Shown: positions 1 to 24,932, counted from the first letter of the stretch. The stretch is DNA of 64,000 nt from Rebecca billardiae RCC1528 (GCA_965240325.2 OZ251223.1:1054001-1118000), one strand, 5' to 3'. The notes: generated by a model not told the origin, from the letters alone. Numbers and translations are program-made.

Positions 1-1
1 G

Positions 2-3000
2 CCACCGCCCTCTCCGCCACCGCCGAGCTCACCGCCCAACCTGCCACCGAGCCCGCCGCCGCGCCCGCCGCCCAGCCCGCCGCCGTCACCACCGCCGAGC
101 CCACCACCGCCGCCGAGCCCACCACCGTCGCCACCACCGAGCCCGCCGCCGCGTCCGCCGCCCAGCCCGCCTCCATCACCCCCGCCGAGCCCACCACCGC
201 CGCCAAGTCCACCACCGTCACCACCACCGAGCCCGCCACCGAGCCCGCCGCCGTCACCCCCGCCGAGCCCACCACCGCCGCTGCCACTGCCACCGTCACC
301 ACCGCCGAGCCCGCCGCCGTCACCACCGCCGAGCCCGCCTCTGGTCGCGCAGTCTCTCTTGGAGCTGGACGGCGGCGGCTGGCAGCTCGTGCGCCGCATC
401 GCGCCGAGCGCGGGCACGTGGCATCCTGCGACGGACAGCCTCGCGGGCACCGACGTGTACGGCACGCCCGGTGGCGCAACGGCCAACGTGACCTTCTCGA
501 TCGCCTTCCCTCCGTCCAACGAGTTCCTCTTCGCGACTGGCGACGGCACCAAGTGGGTCATCTGCACGCGCAACGCGGCGATCGGCGACAACTACGAGAA
601 CGAGCTGAGGCCCGTCCTGCTCGCGTCGAGCGGCGTCACACAGGCCCGGTGGTACAACCGTGCGGGCAATCTGGAGGACCCGTGGATCTCGACGACCGAT
701 CTTGCAGATGCTGCGCCCGCCGCGGGCATACTGTACGGCGAGAACGCCTTCACGCAGTATATGCTCGCGCTGACGCAGAACAACGGCGCCAACGTGTACG
801 TGCGCTTCCGCCCGGCCGAGGTGCTCGATGGCGGCGGCTGGCAGCTCGTGCGCCGCGTCGCGCCGAGCGCGGGAACGTGGCATCCTGCGACGGACAGCCT
901 CGCGGGCACCGACGTGTACGGCACGCCCGGTGGCGCAACGGCCAACGTGACCTTCTCGATCGCCTTCCCTCCGTCCAACGAGTTCCTCTTCGCGACGGGC
1001 GACGGCACCAAGTGGGTCATCTGCACGCGCAACGCGGCGATCGGCGACAACTACGAGAACGAGCTGAGGCCCGTCCTGCTCGCGTCGAGCGGCGTCACAC
1101 AGGCCCGGTGGTACAACCGTGCGGGCTATCCGGAGGACCCGTGGATCTCGACCGTGGATCACTTGGTGGTTTCATCCCCTACCAGTGTGCTGCAGCGCAT
1201 GCTATATGGCGAGAATTCCGTCAGCGTTTATCACATGACATCGCTGAATGGGGCGAACGGCGCCAACGTGTACGTGCGCTTCCGAGCATCCCCGTCACCA
1301 CCGCCCTCGCCGCCGCCCAGCCCGCCACCGCCGCCCTCACCACCGCCATCTCCACCACCCTCGCCGCCGCCATCACCGCCACCCTCGCCGCCACCGAGCC
1401 CGCCACCGCCCTCACCACCGCCATCGTCGCCGCCAAGTCCACCACCATCGCCGCCACCGAGTCCACCGCCGTCACCTCCGCCGTCACCACCACCGAGCCC
1501 ACCACCGTCGCCACCTCCGCCACCGTCACCACCGCCGCGCCCACCTCCGAGCCCACCACCGCCACCGAGCCCACCACCGTCGCCGCCTCCGCCACCGTCA
1601 CCACCGCCGAGCCCACCTCCGAGCCCACCACCGCCGCCGAGCCCACCACCGTCGCCGCCTCCGCCACCGTCACCACCGCCGAGCCAGCCGCCCAGCCCGC
1701 CGCCGAGCCCACCACCGCCACCAAGCCCACCACTGTCGCCACCACCGAGCTCGCCGCCGAGCCCGCCGCCCAGCCCGCCACCGTCACCACCACCGAGTCC
1801 ACCACCGCCGCCAAGTCCACCACCGTCACCACCACCGAGCCCGCCGCCGAGCCCGCCGCCACCGCCGTGCCAGGCTGTTTCCGGCTCGGTGGTGTACGCT
1901 GGCTCGTGCTACGTGTATGTCAGCGGCACCGCTACGTGGCAGGGCGCCCGCAACGCGTGCATGTCCCTGATGCAAGATGGGGACCTGGTCAAGGTGGAGG
2001 GCGGCGCCGAGAACACGTGGCTGTGGAGCAATTTCGGCCAGATCTGGCTCGGCGCGTCCGACCTCACGTCCGAGGGCACATGGTTGTGGGCGCGGGACGG
2101 CTCGGCCGTTTCGTACTACACCAACTGGCAACACGGAGAGCCGAGCAACTCAGGCGGCGTTGAGCACTGCGCTGCAATGTGGAGAGATTGGAATGGCGGC
2201 AAGCTTTGGTACGACGCTTCTTGTGCCTTGGTCTTTCCCTACGTGTGCGAGTCACCGGTACCGCCGAGCCCGCCGCCGAGCCCGCCACCGCCGCCAAGCC
2301 CACCACCGTCACCACCACCGAGCCCGCCGCCGCGCCCACCGCCCAGCCCACCACCGTCGTCCCCGCCGAGACCGCCGCCGCGCCCGCCGCCCAGCCCGCC
2401 GCCGTCCCCCCTGCCGAGCCCGCCACCGTCGCCGCCTCCGCCACCATCACCACCGCCGAGCCCGCCGCCGAGCCCGCCGCCCAGCCCGCCACCGCCACCG
2501 AGCCCACCACCGTCATCGCCACCGAGCCCGCCGCCGCGCCCGCCGCCCAGCCCACCACCGTCACCACCACCGAGTCCACCACCGCAGCCGAGCCCCCCAC
2601 CGTCGCCACCACCGAGCCCGCCGCCGCGCCCGCCGCCCAGCCCACCACCGTCATCCCCGCCGAGCCCGCCGCCGCGCCCGCCGCCCAGCCCGCCACCGTC
2701 ACCCCCGCCGAGCCCGCCACCGTCGCCGCCTCCGCCACCGTCACCACCGCCGAGTCCACCGCCGAGCCCGCCGCCGAGCCCGCCGCCGAGCCCACCACCG
2801 CCACCGAGCCCACCACCGTCACCACCACCGAGCCCGCCACCGAGCCCGCCGCCCAGCCCGCCACCATCACCCCCGCCGAGCCCGCCGCCGCGCCCGCCGC
2901 CCAGCCCGCCACCGTCATCCCCGCCGAGCCCGCCACCGTCGCCGCCTCTGCCACCGTCACCACCGCCAAGCCCGCCGCCGAGCCCGCCGCCGAGCCCGCC

Positions 3001-6000
3001 ACCGCCACCGAGCCCACCACCGTCACCACCACCGAGCCCACCGCCGAGCCCGCCCCCGAGCCCGCCACCGCCGCCAAGCCCACCACCGTCACCACCACCG
3101 AGCCCGCCGCCGAGCCCGCCGCCCAGCCCGCCGCCCAGCTCACCACCGTCGCCACCCCCACCACCGTCACCACCGCCGAGACCGCCGCCGAGCCCGCCAC
3201 CCAGCCCGCCGCCGTCACCACCACCGAGTCCACCACCGCCGCCAAGTCCACCACCGTCACCACCACCGAGCCCGCCGCCGAGCCCGCCGCCGTCACCCCC
3301 GCCGAGCCCACCACCGTCGCCGCCTCCGCCACCGTCACCACCGCCGAGCCCGCCGCCCAGCCCGCCGCCCAGCCCGCCACCGCCACCGAGCCCACCACCG
3401 TCACCACCACCGAGCCCACCGCCGAGCCCGCCCCCGAGCCCGCCACCGCCACCAAGCCCACCACCGTCACCACCACCGAGCCCGCCGCCGAGCCCGCCGC
3501 CGAGCCCGCCGCCCAGCTCACCACCGTCGCCGCCCCCACCACCGTCACCACCGCCGAGCCCGCCGCCGAGCCCACCGCCCAGCCCGCCGCCGTCACCACC
3601 ACCGAGTTCACCACCGCCGCCAAGTCCACCACCGTCACCACCACCGAGCCCGCCGCCGAGCCCGCCGCCGTCACCCCCGCCGAGCCCACCACCGTCGCCG
3701 CCTCCGCCACCGGCACCACCGCCGAGCCCGCCGCCGAGCCCGCCGCCGAGCCCGCCACCGCCACCGAGCCCACCACCGTCACCACCACCGAGCCCGCCGC
3801 CGAGCCCGCCGCCCAGCCCGCCACCGTCACCACCACCGAGTCCACCACCGCCGCCAAGTCCACCACCGTCACCACCACCGAGCCCGCCGCCGAGCCCGCC
3901 GCCGTCACCACCACCGAGCCCACCACCGTCGCCGCCTCCGCCACCGGCACCACCACCGAGCCCGCCGCCGAGCCCGCCGCCGAGCCCGCTACCGCCACCG
4001 AGCCCACCACCGTCACCACCACCGAGCCCGCCGCCGAGCCTGCCGCCGTCACCACCACCGAGCCCACCACCGTCGCCGCCTCCGCCACCGGCACCACCGC
4101 CGAGCCCGCCGCCGAGCCCGCCGCCGAGCCCGCCACCGCCACCGAGCCCGCCACCGTCACCACCACCGAGCCCGCCGCCGAGCCCGCCGCCCAGCCCGCC
4201 GCCGTCACCCCCGCCGAGCCCGCCACCGTGGCCGCCTCCGCCACCGTCACCACCGCCGAGCCCGCCGCCGAGCCCGCCGCCGAGCCCGCCACCGCCACCG
4301 AGCCCACCACCGTCACCACCACCGAGCCCGCCACCGAGCCCGCCGCCGTAACCTCCGCCGAGCCCACCACCGTCGCCGAGCCCGCCACCGTCACCACCGC
4401 CGAGCCCGCCGCCGAGCCCGCCGCCCAGCCCGCCGCCGTCACCCCCGCCGAGTCCACCACCGCCGCCATGTCCACCACCGTCACCACCACCGAGCCCGCC
4501 GCCGAGCCCGCCGCCGTCACCACCACCGAGCCCACCACCGTCGCCGCCTCCGCCACCGTCACCACCGCCGAGCCCACCACCGAGCCCGCCGCCCAGCCCG
4601 CCACCGCCACCGAGCCCGCCACCGTCACCACCGCCGAGCCCGCCGCCGAGCCCGCCGCCGCGCCCGCCACCGCCACCGAGCCCACCACCGTCACCACCAC
4701 CGAGCCCGCCACCGAGCCCGCCGACCAGCCCACCACCGTCACCACCACCGAGTCCACCACCGCTGCCGAGCCCACCACCGTCACCACCACCGAGCCCGCC
4801 ACCGAGCCCGCCGCCGTCACCCCCGCCGAGCCCACCACCGTCGCCGAGCCCGCCACCGTCACCACCGCCGAGCCCGCCGCCGAGCCCGCCGCCCAGCCCG
4901 CCGCCGTCACCCCCGCCGAGTCCACCACCGCCGCCATGTCCACCACCGTCACCACCACCGAGCCCGCCGCCGAGCCCGCCGCCGTCACCACCACCGAGCC
5001 CACCACCGTCGCCGCCTCCGCCACCGTCACCACCGCCGAGCCCACCACCGAGCCCGCCGCCCAGCCCGCCACCGCCACCGAGCCCGCCACCGTCACCACC
5101 GCCGAGCCCGCCGCCGAGCCCGCCGCCGCGCCCGCCACCGCCACCGAGCCCACCACCGTCACCACCACCGAGCCCGCCACCGAGCCCGCCGACCAGCCCA
5201 CCACCGTCACCACCACCGAGTCCACCACCGCTGCCGAGCCCCCCACCGTCGCCACCACCGAGCCCGCCACCGAGCCCGCCGCCCAGCCTGCCGCCGTCAC
5301 CACCACCGAGCCCACCACCGTCGCCACCTCCGCCACCGTCACCACCGCCGAGCCCACCACCGAGCCCGCCGCCGCGCCCACCGCCCAGCCCTCCACCGTC
5401 ATCCCCGCCGAGCCCGCCACCGTCGCCGCCTCCGCCACCGTCACCACCGTCGAGCCCGCCGCCGAGCCCGCCGCCGAGCCCGCCACCGCCACCGAGCCCA
5501 CCACCGTCACCACCACCGAGCCCGCCGCCGCGCCCGCCGCCCAGCCCGCCGCCAAGCCCACCACCTTCGCCCCCGCCTAGTCCGCCGCCCAGCCCGCCGC
5601 CCAGCCCGCCGCCGTCACCTCCGCTGCCGCCACCACCGAGCCCGCCGCCGAGCCCGCCTCCCAGCCCGCCTCCCAACCCGCCACCGAGCCCGCCGCCCAA
5701 CCCGCCGCCAAGCCCACCACCTTCGCCCCCGCCCAGCCCGCCGCCCAGCCCGCCGCCCAGCCCGCCGCCGTCACCTCCGCTGCCTCCACCACCGAGCCCG
5801 CCACCGAGCCCGCCACCCAACCCGCCGCCGAGCCCGCCGCCAAGCCTGCCGCCAAGCCCGCCGCCAAGCCCACCACCTTCGCCCCCGCCCAGCCCGCCGC
5901 CCAGCCCGCCGCCCAGCCCGCCGCCGTCACCTCCGCTGCCGCCACCACCGAGCCCGCCACCGAGCCCGCCGCCGAGCCCTCCACCTTCGCCACCGCCGAC

Positions 6001-17840: not shown

Positions 17841-20563
17841 ATGAGCGCGCACGAGGCGGGCTGGGCCCTCGGTGCGCACGTCGCGGCGCGGCGCCAAGGC
17901 CCCACGACACGCCGCCCGCCCGCCGCCGTCGTGCTCTTCCTCCTCCTCCGCGCGGCGCGGCCGGCCGCCGCCAAGCTGGTGATCGAATCGGGACCAGCGC
18001 CGCTGCGTGGCACCGAGCTGCTCGCCGCGCCGTTTGCGTTCACGCCCGCCGCGTTCGCCGACGTGCGTGCGCGGCTGGTGCTCACGCATCCGGACGAGTG
18101 GGCCGACGCGTCGTGCCCGCCCAAGTACGTCGGCCCCCACTCACTCCGCGGCGCCATCGTCGTGAGCCTCGACCCGAGCCGCAGCGCGTGCTCGTTGGAG
18201 TCGCACGCGCGCTGCGCGGGCGCGGCAGGTGCGGTGGGCTGGGTACTCTTGCGATCGCTCGCCTTTCCCTTGCACCCCGTGCCGGGCTGGGCGTACAATG
18301 CGTGGTGGCCTGGCGACGAGCGCCACCTGCCCGAAACGCCCGCCGCGGACATCACGCAGCGCGCGGCCGCGCCGCTCCTCAAGGCGCTCCGTGCGGGCGA
18401 GGCGGTGCGCGCGCGGCTCACACGCTCGGAGACGGAGTGGGCGAACGTCGGGCGCACGCCCGCCTGGATCACGCGTGACGTCGTGCTCGGCTTCCAGTCC
18501 CTCGCCGTCGCCGAGCTCGCGGTGACGCGGCTGCGCGCTTTCGTGCGCGCGGACGGTAAGCTGTCGCCCGGCATCGCGCAGGCGGTGCTGCTACTGGAGG
18601 TGTTCGTGCAGCTGGTGCGGCTGGTCAGTAGGTGCACGACGCGGGGCGAGCTGCCGTTCCCGGCGGTCTTGTTCCTGATGTCGCTGCACCTCTCGATCGG
18701 CACCATCTCCAGCATGCTCTTCCTGCTCTACTGGGCGCAGGCGGCTTGGCCATCCGCAGGCGTGGTGGGCACGACACCCGTTGCCTCGCCAACGCTGGCG
18801 CACAGCCCGCGCGCGCGGAGGAGGCTGCTCGCGCTGGTGGTCACGATCGCGCTGTTCGACGTGGGCGTGGGGCTCAGCTTCGTCATCACCGTGCCCATCC
18901 TCATGGTGGTCTGGCTGCTCATCTTCGCGGGCCTGCTGCCGCTGCTAGTGCTGACGGTGTCCGCGCACACGCACTGGCGCGCCCGGCACGTGCTCAACGA
19001 GCTGCCTTCAGGCGTGGCGCGCAGGCTGACGCGCACGATGGCGTGCAGCAACGGCGCGTCGGCGCTCGCGTTAGTGCTGAGCGGGAGCTTCCCCTTCGTG
19101 CAAGTGCGCCCGTGGCCCCTCTACGCGGTCGGCTTTGTCTTCCTCTCTGCGCTCAACGTGGCCTCGGCCATGCACGCCGCCGCGTTCGCGCCGCTGGGCG
19201 TGCCGTTGATGTGCGGGCCGATCGAGCGCGCGTCGGCGGCGGTGCTGTCAGGCTTGGCGATGCCACGCCTGGCGCGCGCGCTGGGCTTTGGCGGGCGCGG
19301 CACCGTCGCCCCGCGGCAGCACGAGGTCTCCCACCTGCCCATCGCGCAGAACGCAGCCAGCCCTGAGGCGGGCCCGCCACGTCAGCGCTCCGAGGCTCCG
19401 GCGGCGAACGCGGGTGGCGGCGACGGTGTGCTCGTCCCACCCCCTTTGGGGCCGCATACCATCTTCAGATCTCACCAACGCGCGCAGTTCGAGGCGGGGT
19501 TCCGAGCGCGCGAGCACCTGCTGCTCGGCGTCCAGCTTGGCTACGTGCGCGAGATGCAGCGCGCGCTGAACGTCGGGTCGAGTGTGTCGTCGTTCGAAGT
19601 GGGGCTGCGAGCAAGGCGGCTCAGCCTGGCGCTTGCGCACCGGTCCAGGCTGGGGGTCGGTGGTGGCGGCGAGCCGTGCTCGCTCGCCGAGATAGTCGCC
19701 GGGCAGCACACGCCCGACGGCAGCCCCGCCGTCGGCCGCGCAAACCTCTTCGTCTCGCACGCGCAGCGCTGCCCATTCGACGCCACCCTCTCCGCAGTCG
19801 AGGCGTATGCGAGGCTGCACGGCCTCAAGCCGAGCGAGACATACATCTGTGCGCGCGGCGCGAAGCGCGAGCACCCGACGGCCGCGTGTGTGCACCGCGA
19901 GGGCTTGCTTGCTGCGTGCTTGGGAGTGCCTCGGCGGTTGCTCCCGCACCCTGCCCTCACATTCCCCGACCCTACCTCAACACTCCGCTCCCCCACCAGG
20001 GATCGACGTGCTGTGCATCCGGCAGGCGGTCGTGCGCACAGAGGTGCGGTACATCGGCGAGATTCAGCGCGCGGCGGGGCGTGTGGTGCTCGTCCTCCAG
20101 CCGTGGACGGCGCCCGTCTGCCTCACGCGCGCATGGTGTCTCTGTGCGCGCGCGACGTGCGCGAGCGACGTTCGCGCCACGCACGCCTGCCTGCGCTTGC
20201 GCTCGCGCGCTCACCTTGCACGCGCATCGCCCATTCCCCGCCTGGCCGGCACGCGCGTGCTTCGCAGACGAGGTGCTTGTGGCGAGGCGGCTCGGGCTGC
20301 CCATCGGCCTTGCGCTGCCCACGGAGGAGCTGCGCTCCGTCGCCTCGGCCCTCGCGGGCGACCGCGCGTCACTCGAACTCGCGCTCTCGCAGTTCGACGT
20401 GCGCCAATCGATCTCGAGCGTGGAGGAGGACAGGGCGATCATCTTCAGCATGATCGAGCAGCTGTTTGACGACGCGGAGACAGCCCCCGAAGCGTTCAAC
20501 CGCGAGACGCACGCCGCGCTGCGCGAGGGTCTGGCTGCCTTCTCGTGGTCGGCCGTTGTGTAG
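17841..20563 (+). CDS. Putative receptor: signal peptide + PA-like domain + 7 TM + C-terminal TIR/HET-like domain. Exons 17841-19848, 20000-20143, 20268-20563.
   Basis: GT-AG introns 19849-19999 and 20144-20267 restore FVSHA...YIWIDVLCI.Q...VVLVLQPW..P.CLTRAWCLYE...FDV...EDRAII. Seven hydrophobic segments at ~18460-19200. PA-like AGAAGAVGWV and PAADI...LLKAL..GEAV. Confidence 0.8.
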
Positions 20564-20863
20564 CCCGAAGCTTGGGCTTGTTCTAATGGAGCGGTTGCTG
20601 TACGAGGCCGCCATGCTGACAATGTCTCGCGTCGTTATTCTTCGAAAGGATAATTAATTAATTATTGGTATGAATATCCATCGGCGGGAATCTTAACGGC
20701 CGAATCTTAACCGCAAGTTTCATCACGCATAGTAGAAAAGTATATCGTTTTGGAACACCGAATACGGAGCGTCGCAACCACCTTCCTTATTTGAACTTTC
20801 CTGTGAGTACCGACGATTAATAATACGCGGCTGACAATCGCGGTTGGGCGCGCGGCCGGGGAG

Positions 20864-22904
20864 ATGCTGCGTGACTCCGAGTCGCAGGCGGCGCCGTACG
20901 CTTCCGCGGACGGCGCCGACCCAGCCGCGGCGGTGCGGGCACTGCTCATGCGGGCGGCGGCAGACGGCCGTCGACGGCGGGCGCGCGTGCGCCGACCGAT
21001 GATGACGCTCGGCATGGTATGCGTTGTTGTGGGCCTCCCTGTCCTCCTGTTCGGCCATGCGGTGCACCTGCTGTTCAGAGAGGTCGCCATGGGCGTGATC
21101 ATCACGGGCGGTTGGTTCTTGGTGTGCGCGATGGTACCGGACGATCCCAGGTCGCCGTACTACGTCGCATCGTTCACCATGACCGTCGAGCTCGTGCTCC
21201 TGCCCTGGGACACGCTCAACACGATCGATAAGTTCGCAGAGGCGCGCGCCCTGTGCACCGCACACAACGAGCAGCAGCCAGAATGCCGGCACCTGGCCGT
21301 GATGCAGGCGACGATGATCTGGGACACGTGCACTGCCTTCATCGCGGTCGCCGTCTGCGTGCACACCTTCGCCAGCTGCTGGCACCACGGCTCGCAGCCC
21401 AGGCGAACTCGGCGGCGGATCATCTCGCTACTGCGGTACATCCTGCCGGCGTACACGATGGGCATCGCAGCGCGCGAGGTGAGCGCGGCGCTGCACCTGC
21501 GGCCCGGGGCAGGCGGGGCCACGTGGGTGGACTCGGCGCCGACGCTCGTGCTCGCGGCGTACGTCCTCTTGATCGCTCTCGTCGGCATGTCTCCTGGCGG
21601 CATCGAGCGGCTGCATCGCTCGCTCATGTCGCGCGGCCTGACAGAGGGCGCGAGCTCGGCGGCGGTGATCGCCTCGCTGATCGGCGGCAGCGGGCGCACG
21701 CCGGCGGAGACGATGGACAGGGCCATTGAAACGCTGCGATGCGTGTCGCTCGACCGCATCCAGCGCCACCATCTCGCGCCGCCGCGAGGCTCCTCGACGC
21801 GCCGGGAGACGCAACGCAAGGAAGCCTTTCAGGCGGTGGTGGTTCAAAGCGCGGCGGCGGCGACGGGTGCGCGCGACTCGGGCAGCGACCGCAGCCCCTC
21901 GTCGGGGCTGAGGAGTGTGCCGACGGGAATGCCCAGCGCAGGGGCATCCATCGCGCCGGCTGACGTCGACGAGCCCTCCCGCGCGAGCGTGCGCTCGTCC
22001 TCCGACCGCTCGAAGTCGGTGCAGTCTGGACGGTCGTCGGCCGGCGCGGAGCTTTCGTCCAGGCTGCAGACGCTCGGGCTGGGCGAGCTCATGACTCCCG
22101 AGCACATCAGCGTGCCCGCCGAGTTCGGCCGCATCGACGCGTTCGTCAGCCACAGGTATGCGCTTGCCTCGAGGCGGGTGCGTGCGCGCCGCGCCGCCAT
22201 GCGCATGACACCTTGCGCCCGCACGCCACCACGCGTCGCACGTACGCCGCGGCGCCCGCAGCTGGTCGGACGACCCCGACGCCAAGTGGGCGGCGCTGCA
22301 GCGCTGGCGCGAGCGCTTTAAGGCAATCCACCGTCGCGAGCCGACGATCTGGATCGACCGACTCTGCATCGACGAGGACAACATCGCCGAGTCGCTGGAG
22401 AGCCTCCCCGTGTACCTTGCCGGCTGCCGCACGATGCTCGCCCTCGTGGGTGAGACCTACACGAGAAGGCTCTGGTGGTGCGCGCGCCCGCCGCCCCGCG
22501 GCGCCAGCGCGCCCCGCTGCACTGCACTGTCTGAGCCGGCCGCCGTGCGGCGCCCCACCCCGCGCAGCGTGATGGAGCTGTCCGTCTTCACGATGACTGG
22601 CGGTGAGGATGACCAGATCGAATGGGTGCGTCTCGAGCACGTGCCGCCAACGGACGTGGGCACCTTCGACGTGAGGCAAGCTCGATGCACGCTCGAGACC
22701 GACTCGGACCGACTACTCTCGACCATCGAGGCGTCGTTCGAGGGCACCGAGCACTTCAACGAGACCGTCCGTATGCTTCTTGCGCGTGCGACCAGCCGGG
22801 CCACGCTGACACGCCCTGACTTGCCTACCAGCCACGAGGCTTTGATTGATGTGCAGGGCGTCCGGTCCGCCCAGCACTCTCGTGTCTCGTCATCGTCGCA
22901 ATAG
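20864..22904 (+). CDS. Multi-pass (~6 TM) membrane protein with C-terminal TIR-like domain. Exons 20864-22155, 22262-22477, 22568-22904.
   Basis: Introns 22156-22261 and 22478-22567 restore DAFVSHSWSDD..AKW..L.RW...F.....EPTIWIDRLCI...LPVYLAGC..MLALVGETY.RRLWCVME. Confidence 0.85.
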
Positions 22905-23751: not shown

Positions 23752-24932
23752 TCAGAAGCGAACGTCATCCTGCCAAGCAGGCTCATCGCCCCAACGATCA
23801 ACAGGCATGGAGTTCTGCCGGTAGGGCTTCTCGTGCTGCGAGATGTCGGCGCGCAGGTTGAGCAGATCGTCGCAGGCCGTCTGTGTTGTCTTCAGGAACG
23901 CCGTGGTGTCAAACGTGCACAGCCTGCCATGAAAGGGATCGCGCATCTCGTGTGCGACCGCGAGGATGGCTGAGAAGAACGCGCTGAGCACCACTGCGAG
24001 CGGAGCAGCGTGCCACTGCATATGTGAGGCGAGGGCGCACGGCATGACCACGCAGCAGTACAGCATCGTCACCACCTCCGCGGCAAGGATGAATGGCTCA
24101 GGGATACCCTGGTTCAGGTACATGACAATGTCCGCCGAGCCACCGCGCATGTGCGACACATTGGACTGCACCTGGTACATGATGTTGCCGCGCCCGATCA
24201 TGCTCTCCGCGGCGGTGAGCTGGGCATAGAACGACGAGAGGAACCACTGGTACGCCTGCGCCCGTCACGCGCCCGAGCATGGGCACAGCGGGCGGGAAAG
24301 GGGGCAGGGCAGGGACTCAGACTGAGCGCCTACGCACATGGTAGCCCGCCACGCTCGACTCGCCGCGCGCGCGCACGCTGGGCACATACAATGTTGTACC
24401 GTGCCGTCTTCGCCTGCTCCAGTGCCTTGTGCTCGCCGCCGTCCTTGTCGAGCAGACCGAGCTCGCACAGCGGCTCGAGGCTGGTGTCCTTGTGCCCTGC
24501 CTGTAGGCTCACGACATGCGCCATCAGCAGGTAGCGCGCAAGCGTGCGGCGCCCCTCCCGGGATCGATCATCCATTCCGTTCAGGTAGGTGCAGAGCATC
24601 ACCATCGTGTCGATCGAGCGGCCAAGGACGGCGCCGGCCAGGTCGCGTAGCTTCCACCACCGGCCATACCCAGTAGACATGTAGAAGCCAAGCGCAAAGG
24701 TCACACACGTCGTGAGCAGAGGGAAGGCCTTCTCTAGCACGGCTACGGCCTTGGTCACCGACACGCGATGCGGGTCCTCCGGCGGAAGCGTGCTTGCCTG
24801 CGCAAGGAGCCGACACATCCCGTACGTGACTGCGAGCGATGCACACACAATCGGCGCAATAACCTCGCCAAGCGCCAACGCCACGCCGACGCGCGGCTGC
24901 GTCGGCGTGCCACGTGAGCGCGCGCGCAACAT
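23752..24932 (-). CDS. Bestrophin-family anion channel; intron 24256-24389
   Basis: TFALGFYMS.GYGRWW, RRTLARY, YLNQGIP.PF and EMRDPF motifs. A GT-AG intron joins the two ORFs in frame. Confidence 0.8.

Follow-up and report, generated by a model that had tools for sequence, protein, structure and literature searches.

The stretch of DNA analysed here, referred to below as the window, comprises 64,000 nucleotides from Rebecca billardiae RCC1528 (GCA_965240325.2 OZ251223.1:1054001-1118000). At positions 17,841 to 22,904 it contains two genes, here named gene 1 and gene 2, each predicted to encode a multi-pass membrane protein with a C-terminal domain related to the TIR and HET domains. A sequence-only reading of the window had described them as adjacent and co-oriented, and they do share one strand, the stop codon of gene 1 and the start codon of gene 2 being separated by exactly 300 bp (Table 1). 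The spliced products are 815 (gene 1) and 614 (gene 2) residues long, and both reading frames are open to the stop codon. The exons display a codon periodicity, with a GC content of 0.86-0.90 at third codon positions (GC3) against 0.54 at second positions (GC2), which is sustained through both long first exons and absent from the introns, and the spacer and both gene flanks are AT-richer (GC 0.44-0.51). As part of an explanation of the whole locus that we rate as moderately probable, both would be real, separately transcribed nuclear genes.

Table 1. Exons, introns and spacer of gene 1 and gene 2 (window positions; Glu codons are those of the W-C-x-x-E motif)
Feature	Position	Strand	Length and content
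Gene 1 exon 1	17841..19848	+	669 codons plus 1 nt; open frame, GC3 0.90; signal-peptide-like start, ~165-aa ectodomain (weakly PA-like), ~7 hydrophobic helices, low-complexity linker, first TIR-like strand (LFVSH)
Gene 1 intron 1	19849..19999	+	151 nt, GTGCGCGC...CAG; codon periodicity absent
Gene 1 exon 2	20000..20143	+	W-I-D-V-L-C-I-R-Q to R-A-W-C-L; TIR/HET-like domain core
Gene 1 intron 2	20144..20267	+	124 nt, GTGCGCGC...CAG
Gene 1 exon 3	20268..20563	+	Y-E (Glu codon 20270-20272) to stop; C-terminal domain half with FDVRQ
Intergenic spacer	20564..20863	.	300 bp, GC 0.48
Gene 2 exon 1	20864..22155	+	basic cytosolic N-terminal helix, six-helix membrane module, conserved juxtamembrane helix (invariant Ala266), Ser/Arg-rich linker, first TIR-like strand (DAFVSH)
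Gene 2 intron 1	22156..22261	+	106 nt, GTATGC...CAG
Gene 2 exon 2	22262..22477	+	S-W-S-D-D to R-R-L-W; domain core (WIDRLCIDE)
Gene 2 intron 2	22478..22567	+	90 nt, in frame, GTGCGCGC...CAG
Gene 2 exon 3	22568..22904	+	C-V-M-E (Glu codon 22575-22577) to stop; C-terminal domain half

All four introns are of the GT..AG type. In the unspliced state the frame of gene 2 stops early and that of gene 1 enters out-of-frame sequence, so that the domain is lost from both genes; the observation that the W-C-x-x-E motifs become visible only after splicing was thereby reproduced. The junctions create WCL/YE in gene 1 and W-C/VME in gene 2 (the slash marks the junction), and in the spliced models both Glu codons are found where they had been placed. 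Support for the splicing of both genes comes from comparison with relatives. The translation of window positions 22263-22901, which reads through intron 2 of gene 2 because this intron is 90 nt long and in frame, was searched against 1.84 billion representative proteins. The relatives aligned mostly in two stretches, skipping the 30 intron codons, with the family matches to exon 2 covering query residues 1-72. The spliced gene 2 domain, compared with the same proteins, aligned as a single stretch that spans both junctions (lowest E 4e-55). Likewise, a profile of 50 database relatives matched spliced gene 2 at E 4.5e-74 and spliced gene 1 at E 6e-15, unbroken across the junctions; removal of intron 1 of gene 1 joins ETYI/WIDVLCIRQ and yields an unbroken alignment to the family profile, and exon 3 of this gene was also detected on its own by the six-frame profile scan. 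At the point corresponding to intron 1 of gene 2, the called open reading frame (ORF) of the orthologue P0001 runs beyond FVSH into non-homologous sequence. The 20 family members looked up include two MMETSP transcripts and one protein from a EukProt transcriptome, and of the 80 best environmental contigs, 76 hold the domain within a single uninterrupted ORF. The donors at window positions 19849, 20144 and 22478, i.e. three of the four, read GTGCGCGC. The window contains 50 copies of this octamer where 33 are expected, and one of 100 shuffles reaches the observed number; as the enrichment is modest and the motif is also present inside exons it was dropped as evidence for splicing.

The C-terminal domains of the two genes are 25% identical over 167 residues (blastp E 1e-9), with the motifs FVSH, WID..CI, R.WC..E and FDVRQ common to both, and at so low an identity the pair is not a recent tandem duplication. 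No N-terminal similarity was found between gene 1 and gene 2, in line with the earlier description of dissimilar transmembrane regions attached to related C-terminal domains. The domain defines a family of 1,888 representative clusters at E<=1e-3, or 1,119 at E<=1e-10, with the consensus (alignment A1) VDAFxSHSWHDD...KW.ALQ.W...W.DK.CIDQ.NI...L.CLPVFLAGC..LLVL.G.TYL.RLWC..EL...FD...A.C....D..RLL..IEA.FG. Conservation of the central motif is close to absolute: in 153 aligned domains, from about 150 family representatives each below 50% identical to one another, R and W were found in all 153, C in 152, and E in 150 of 151. Both window genes keep all four residues, and gene 2 retains every family-invariant residue.

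Pfam holds no model that captures this family. Exon 2 of gene 2 gave a HET match (PF06985) of 17.5 bits against a cut-off of 22.5 (E 0.0054), spanning only profile positions 45-65, that is the W-I-D-x-L-C-I stretch; the pieces of gene 1 gave no HET match, and the window pieces of both genes gave no TIR match. Among 50 aligned relatives, weak matches were obtained to HET in 41, to TIR_2 in 29 (E<=1), to TIR in eight and to ThsB_TIR in one. The best TIR_2 E-value in this set was 8.8e-07, and the best for HET was 5.2e-4 (relative P0005, 20.8 bits, below the cut-off). With TIR_2, P0005 scored 14.2 bits when taken in full and 17.1 bits when reduced to its domain, the cut-off being 28 bits. A PADLOC search returned no significant match, only a single ThsB match at E 0.02. 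When the A1 profile was compared with the sequences in the PDB, the seven best of its individually weak matches were all TIR domains (SNC1, SIGIRR, TLR15/TLR2, RPPT-TIR and ADR2). In the SNC1 match the family segment YLsRLWCvvEL falls on YASSTWCLNEL, which sets the W-C-x-x-E motif on WCLNEL.

A TIR fold for the family domain is predicted with confidence from an AlphaFold2 model of P0005:383-579, a region 51% identical to the gene 2 domain (mean predicted local distance difference test score, pLDDT, 87.6; predicted template modelling score, pTM, 0.80). The model runs strand, helix, strand, helix, strand, helix, strand, followed by helices. Foldseek returned top matches that were almost all TIR domains (SPARTA, RUN1, SNC1, RPS4, AbTir and ThsB; E 5e-4 to 2e-2), and in VIA-align the 50 best matches were TIR domains without exception. 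The best of these was the grapevine RUN1 TIR (7rts), with Z 10.0 and a root-mean-square deviation of 3.5 A over 129 aligned residues (model residues 9-171), while SARM1 was matched at Z of about 8-8.6. The motif Glu lies within helix 91-102 of the model, corresponding to helix C. The nearest ESM Atlas clusters to the model were haptophyte proteins, one of them auto-named 'TIR domain-containing protein', with canonical TIR clusters next. The fold of this relative, in combination with the alignment of the Glu to that of SNC1, supports the assignment of the C-terminal domain of both genes to the TIR/HET superfamily, as had been suggested from the motifs.

Both genes appear to encode multi-pass membrane proteins, as previously proposed, with six predicted helices in gene 2 and about seven in gene 1. 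A single-pass search matched the first ~340 residues of gene 2 to the relatives P0008, P0003 and P0005 (E 1e-23 to 1e-26), and after iteration the module (~320 residues, six helices) was found in 124 of 152 family representatives. Hydrophobic helices precede the domain in 96 of the 97 representatives with at least 150 residues upstream of it. In alignment A2 of the module a basic N-terminal helix is seen, helix 2 is followed by a conserved L-P-x-D, and the loop that joins helices 3 and 4 holds two conserved Cys; further features are a basic loop on the cytosolic side and the juxtamembrane helix W-L-x-S-x-G...A-A-A-x-I-A-x-L-x-G-G, in which one Ala is invariant. This last helix is located at window positions 21620-21720 (gene 2 residues ~253-290), after the sixth helix, and A266 is the sole invariant column of the alignment; it might serve as a gate or as an oligomerisation helix. 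An AlphaFold2 model of the N-terminal sequence of gene 2 itself (mean pLDDT 82.4) shows six long helices and, after them, three short ones. The positive-inside rule would place both ends of the module in the cytosol. The Ser/Arg-rich linker between module and domain is ~80 residues long in gene 2, against ~30 in most relatives. In the word-indexed protein search the sole match to exon 1 of gene 2 was the orthologue P0001, 49% identical, and the A2 profile found two proteins only. Comparison with solved structures gave ZnT1 as the best Foldseek match (E 0.13), and the best hits of a wide VIA-align search were BAR domains and designed bundles with Z at most 9.4. These values fall below the level at which matches between helical bundles become meaningful, so a specific fold for the six-helix module was rejected. 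The available alignments make gene 2 a typical representative of a large family of protist proteins in which a six-helix membrane module is combined with a TIR-like domain.

Among the relatives, P0002 (an ENA contig, 1110 residues) carries two complete units of this kind in one ORF, the first composed of module 14-313 and domain 303-470 and the second of module 477-818 and domain 800-957; this represents a natural tandem fusion or, alternatively, two neighbouring genes that were merged into one ORF. In P0106 (JGI, 732 residues) a Lectin_C domain (C-type lectin, E 2.5e-13) follows the TIR-like domain, an odd arrangement if the latter is cytosolic.

The N-terminal part of gene 1 is of a different nature. 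Exon 1 had no sequence homologue in protein searches, including the word-indexed search, and gave no match to the membrane module family of gene 2; gene 1 matches the family by its domain only. Judged from these comparisons, gene 1 is a divergent family member with a different N-terminus. The number of its helices, about seven, was derived from hydropathy and inspection, and a long linker follows them. The ectodomain (~165 residues) is possibly PA-like: it scored 13.9 bits against the Pfam PA model (PF02225; cut-off 23.9, E 0.061), and an ESM Atlas feature search led to clusters with PA in 10% of members (score 0.89-0.91), while a search against PDB sequences gave no match. A combination of PA domain and multi-pass protease of the presenilin/SPPL2 type was considered for gene 1 and dropped, as no protease motifs were seen and no Pfam match was obtained. 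The term 'receptor', applied earlier to both proteins, thus suits gene 1, with its signal peptide and ectodomain, and the short extracellular loops of gene 2 make this protein a poorer fit.

The six-frame profile scan of the window revealed no third copy of the domain. The genes flanking the pair encode a PLP-dependent enzyme, a P-loop protein of the PRK/uridine-kinase family, a bestrophin-like protein, a GFO/IDH oxidoreductase, a nucleotide-sugar transporter, a cyclase, a TLDc protein and a TCP-1 chaperonin. As these are ordinary housekeeping genes, the locus is not a dedicated island. Closely downstream of gene 2, at window 23755-24264 on the minus strand, is the bestrophin-like ORF (Bestrophin_2, E 3.7e-07). 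Bestrophins are among the genes associated with virus resistance in Gephyrocapsa (Emiliania) huxleyi (PMC12489294); the proximity to gene 2 is probably a coincidence. At the beginning of the window, positions 1-6000 display a GC content of 0.72-0.81, a GC skew of -0.25 to -0.47 and an AT skew of up to +0.55.

The idea that the two genes form one module was not borne out by the distribution of the family. The locus of Diacronema lutheri holds a single copy, and none of the 80 best environmental loci found with the domain profile, most of which are short, contains two copies side by side; a metagenome scan with gene 2 found nothing. Comparison of synteny is limited by the contigs of the P0001 orthologue, which break in a simple repeat just upstream of the gene. 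This orthologue is present in three assemblies, all short (1.4-1.6 kb), two of which begin in the repeat; in one contig (Logan ERR14847148, positions 1-60) it is GC-rich, would encode GLGLGL or ARARAR, and lies ~200 bp upstream of the start codon. It is plausible that gene 1 and gene 2 are adjacent by chance.

Named relatives come from D. lutheri, from Pavlovales sp. CCMP2436 and from a dinoflagellate transcriptome, and the ESM Atlas neighbours are mostly Haptophyta. In one haptophyte ESM Atlas cluster of 89 members, an H-NOX domain (HNOB, 99% of members) is joined to the same TIR-like fold. No viral relatives were found in IMG/VR. In bacterial and archaeal genomes two contigs from metagenome-assembled genomes (MAGs) matched, RGVM01000075.1 ('Chitinophagia MAG') and CBDDTI010000524.1 ('bacterium MAG'). 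The domain of the latter falls into two ORF pieces, which cover profile positions 7-33 and 49-113 and look as though an intron separated them, and for this reason the two are probably eukaryotic contigs mis-binned in bacterial MAGs.

The closest published counterparts are the receptor-like multi-pass membrane TIR proteins with a conserved Glu described in 2025 from the haptophyte G. huxleyi, whose genes respond to virus infection and for which a receptor-like, signal-producing role was proposed (New Phytol, PMC12489294). The likeness, which is drawn from the published description, lies in the haptophyte host, the multi-pass membrane TIR architecture and the conserved Glu; the G. huxleyi genes differ in having been recognised through HHsuite matches to the TIR families of Pfam and through their expression in the course of virus infection. 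Among solved structures the best matches are the plant TIRs RUN1, RPP1, SNC1, RPS4 and L6 (Z 8-10 over 120-137 residues), which are NADases and 2',3'-cyclic nucleotide monophosphate (2',3'-cNMP) synthetases. They share with the window family the helix-C W-C-x-x-E with its neighbouring Cys and the D-x-F-x-S start of strand A. However, the identity is only 14-17%, and the plant domains are fused to NB-ARC-LRR rather than to membrane modules. In the strand-B region, moreover, the window family carries the HET-type W-x-D-K-x-C-I-D-Q in place of the plant BB-loop sequence. The W-I-D-x-x-C-I-x-Q motif is shared with the fungal HET domain (PF06985), an effector of heterokaryon-incompatibility cell death, but the family matches span only ~20-30 residues of the 146-position model where the stretch is shown, and fungal HET domains occur as soluble proteins or in NLR-type fusions, in contrast to the multi-pass membrane modules found here. 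HET has been described as a remote TIR relative with a conserved Glu (PMC4986451; PMC9153377), and both HET homologues in Haptophyceae and the link between HET and TIR were reported in 2014 (PMC4986451). SARM1, AbTir, ThsB and the SPARTA TIR-APAZ agree with the family in fold (Z 7.5-8.6) and in a WxxxE motif whose W and E contact the substrate; SARM1 and the bacterial TIR NADases differ in their partner domains, and neither has a significant sequence match to the window family.

SARM1 and the bacterial TIR NADases require oligomerisation for activity. By analogy with these and with the plant TIRs, the best explanation of the locus, which we regard as moderately probable, is that both genes encode multi-pass membrane proteins whose cytosolic TIR/HET-superfamily domains act as triggered NAD+-cleaving enzymes. 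A trigger would cause the membrane part to bring the TIR-like domains together, and the active site would form only on this association, under the control of the membrane module. The assembled domains would then cleave NAD+, or possibly nucleic acid in view of the plant-type Cys beside the Glu, and the output could be an NAD-derived nucleotide signal, depletion of NAD+ or possibly 2',3'-cNMPs, in a setting of stress, infection or cell-death signalling. The W-x-x-x-E spacing of the family equals that of enzymatic TIRs. In AbTir, W204 and E208 of the helix-C WxxxE turn inward and bind a substrate analogue, and most TIR hydrolases need the helix-C Glu in order to be active (PMC10641520). For the synthesis of 2',3'-cNMP by plant TIRs, the Cys beside the Glu is of importance (PMC9153377).

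Several observations weigh against this explanation. All HET and TIR scores displayed fall under the Pfam cut-offs, which leaves the sequence links to these families weak, and ten full-length relatives gave no Pfam match above cut-off for the TIR-like domain. The matches of the A1 profile to TIR domains in the PDB are individually insignificant (E 0.26-1). The domain model was made for P0005 and thus describes a relative of gene 2, and its target-normalised Foldseek TM-scores to stand-alone TIR-domain chains amount to 0.4-0.5. Gene 1 lacks the otherwise invariant D15, S21, W22, D24, K29, P70 and G84 (numbering of the first A1 row), and because of the loss of these residues it may have no activity or may function in another way. 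The classic description of TLR-type TIRs is that of adaptors, and the TIR of TLR4 has a similar motif, so that the motif alone is no proof of catalysis. The TLR4 motif, W-x-C-x-x-E, is likewise reported in helix C (PMC10641520), and a 2025 review still gives 'not determined' for the biochemical activity of HET domains (PMC12881547).

The same features could be read as those of a non-catalytic assembly or adaptor module that acts by homotypic contacts, with the membrane part as receptor or anchor. Homotypic recruitment is classic for the TIR domains of TLRs and MyD88, and was the original proposal for fungal HET domains. The motif in helix C of the TLR4 TIR and the loss of several family-invariant residues in gene 1 would fit such a role, as would the absence of NADase activity in some TIR domains that still need TIR-TIR association (PMC9153377). 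However, the near-absolute conservation of R, W, C and E among representatives this divergent is a pattern seen more typically in active sites than in contact surfaces, and the closest structural matches are the enzymatic plant TIRs, SARM1, SPARTA and ThsB; an adaptor function is thus considered rather unlikely. Somewhat less likely still is that the proteins are mainly channels, transporters or physiological sensors, with the TIR-like tail as a regulatory or nucleotide-binding element in ordinary signalling (e.g. of the Ca2+/ADP-ribose type) rather than in defence. The six-helix module is conserved as widely as the TIR-like domain, its short outer loops suit ligand binding poorly, the fusion of the same domain to H-NOX gas sensors in haptophytes speaks for general signalling, and the flanking genes are of the housekeeping kind. 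Against this stands that no solved channel or transporter rose above the helical-bundle background in either structural search and that no pore or transport motif was identified.

The arrangement of the two genes also brings to mind the paired plant TIR-NLRs (NLR, nucleotide-binding leucine-rich-repeat protein), in which case the divergent gene 1 would sense and the canonical gene 2 execute. Adjacency, common orientation and the 300-bp spacing are compatible with a dedicated sensor/helper pair of this type, and so is the combination of an ectodomain and a degenerate TIR-like domain in gene 1 with a canonical gene 2. The single copy in D. lutheri and the lack of double copies among the 80 mostly short environmental loci speak against it, the contigs of the P0001 orthologue end in a repeat just upstream, and chance adjacency is plausible; such a pair is therefore regarded as very improbable. 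A more far-reaching proposal, which is hardly more credible, holds that the six-helix module is a new membrane sensor (of voltage, lipid, ion or virus entry) that gates a HET/TIR enzyme, and that gene 1 and gene 2 form a hetero-oligomeric sensor/executor pair. If true, a membrane event would be converted directly into an NAD-derived second messenger, and a first biochemical handle on HET-type domains would be gained.

With regard to novelty, the idea of membrane-bound TIR proteins in haptophytes is already published, and no new principle emerges from the window genes, which are two added members, one canonical (gene 2) and one divergent (gene 1), of a large known kind. Their interest derives from the wider context. 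In bacteria, plants and animals, TIR enzymes translate the sensing of pathogens into NAD-derived signals or cell death. Hardly anything is known of what they do in marine microalgae, in which viruses bring blooms to an end. The family described here is abundant in the transcriptomes of haptophytes and other protists; its sequences are intermediate between canonical TIR domains and the fungal HET domain, and exceptions to the catalytic-type motif are very few. Activity of one compact member would bear both on the question of HET-like domains as enzymes and on membrane-coupled TIR signalling in algae.

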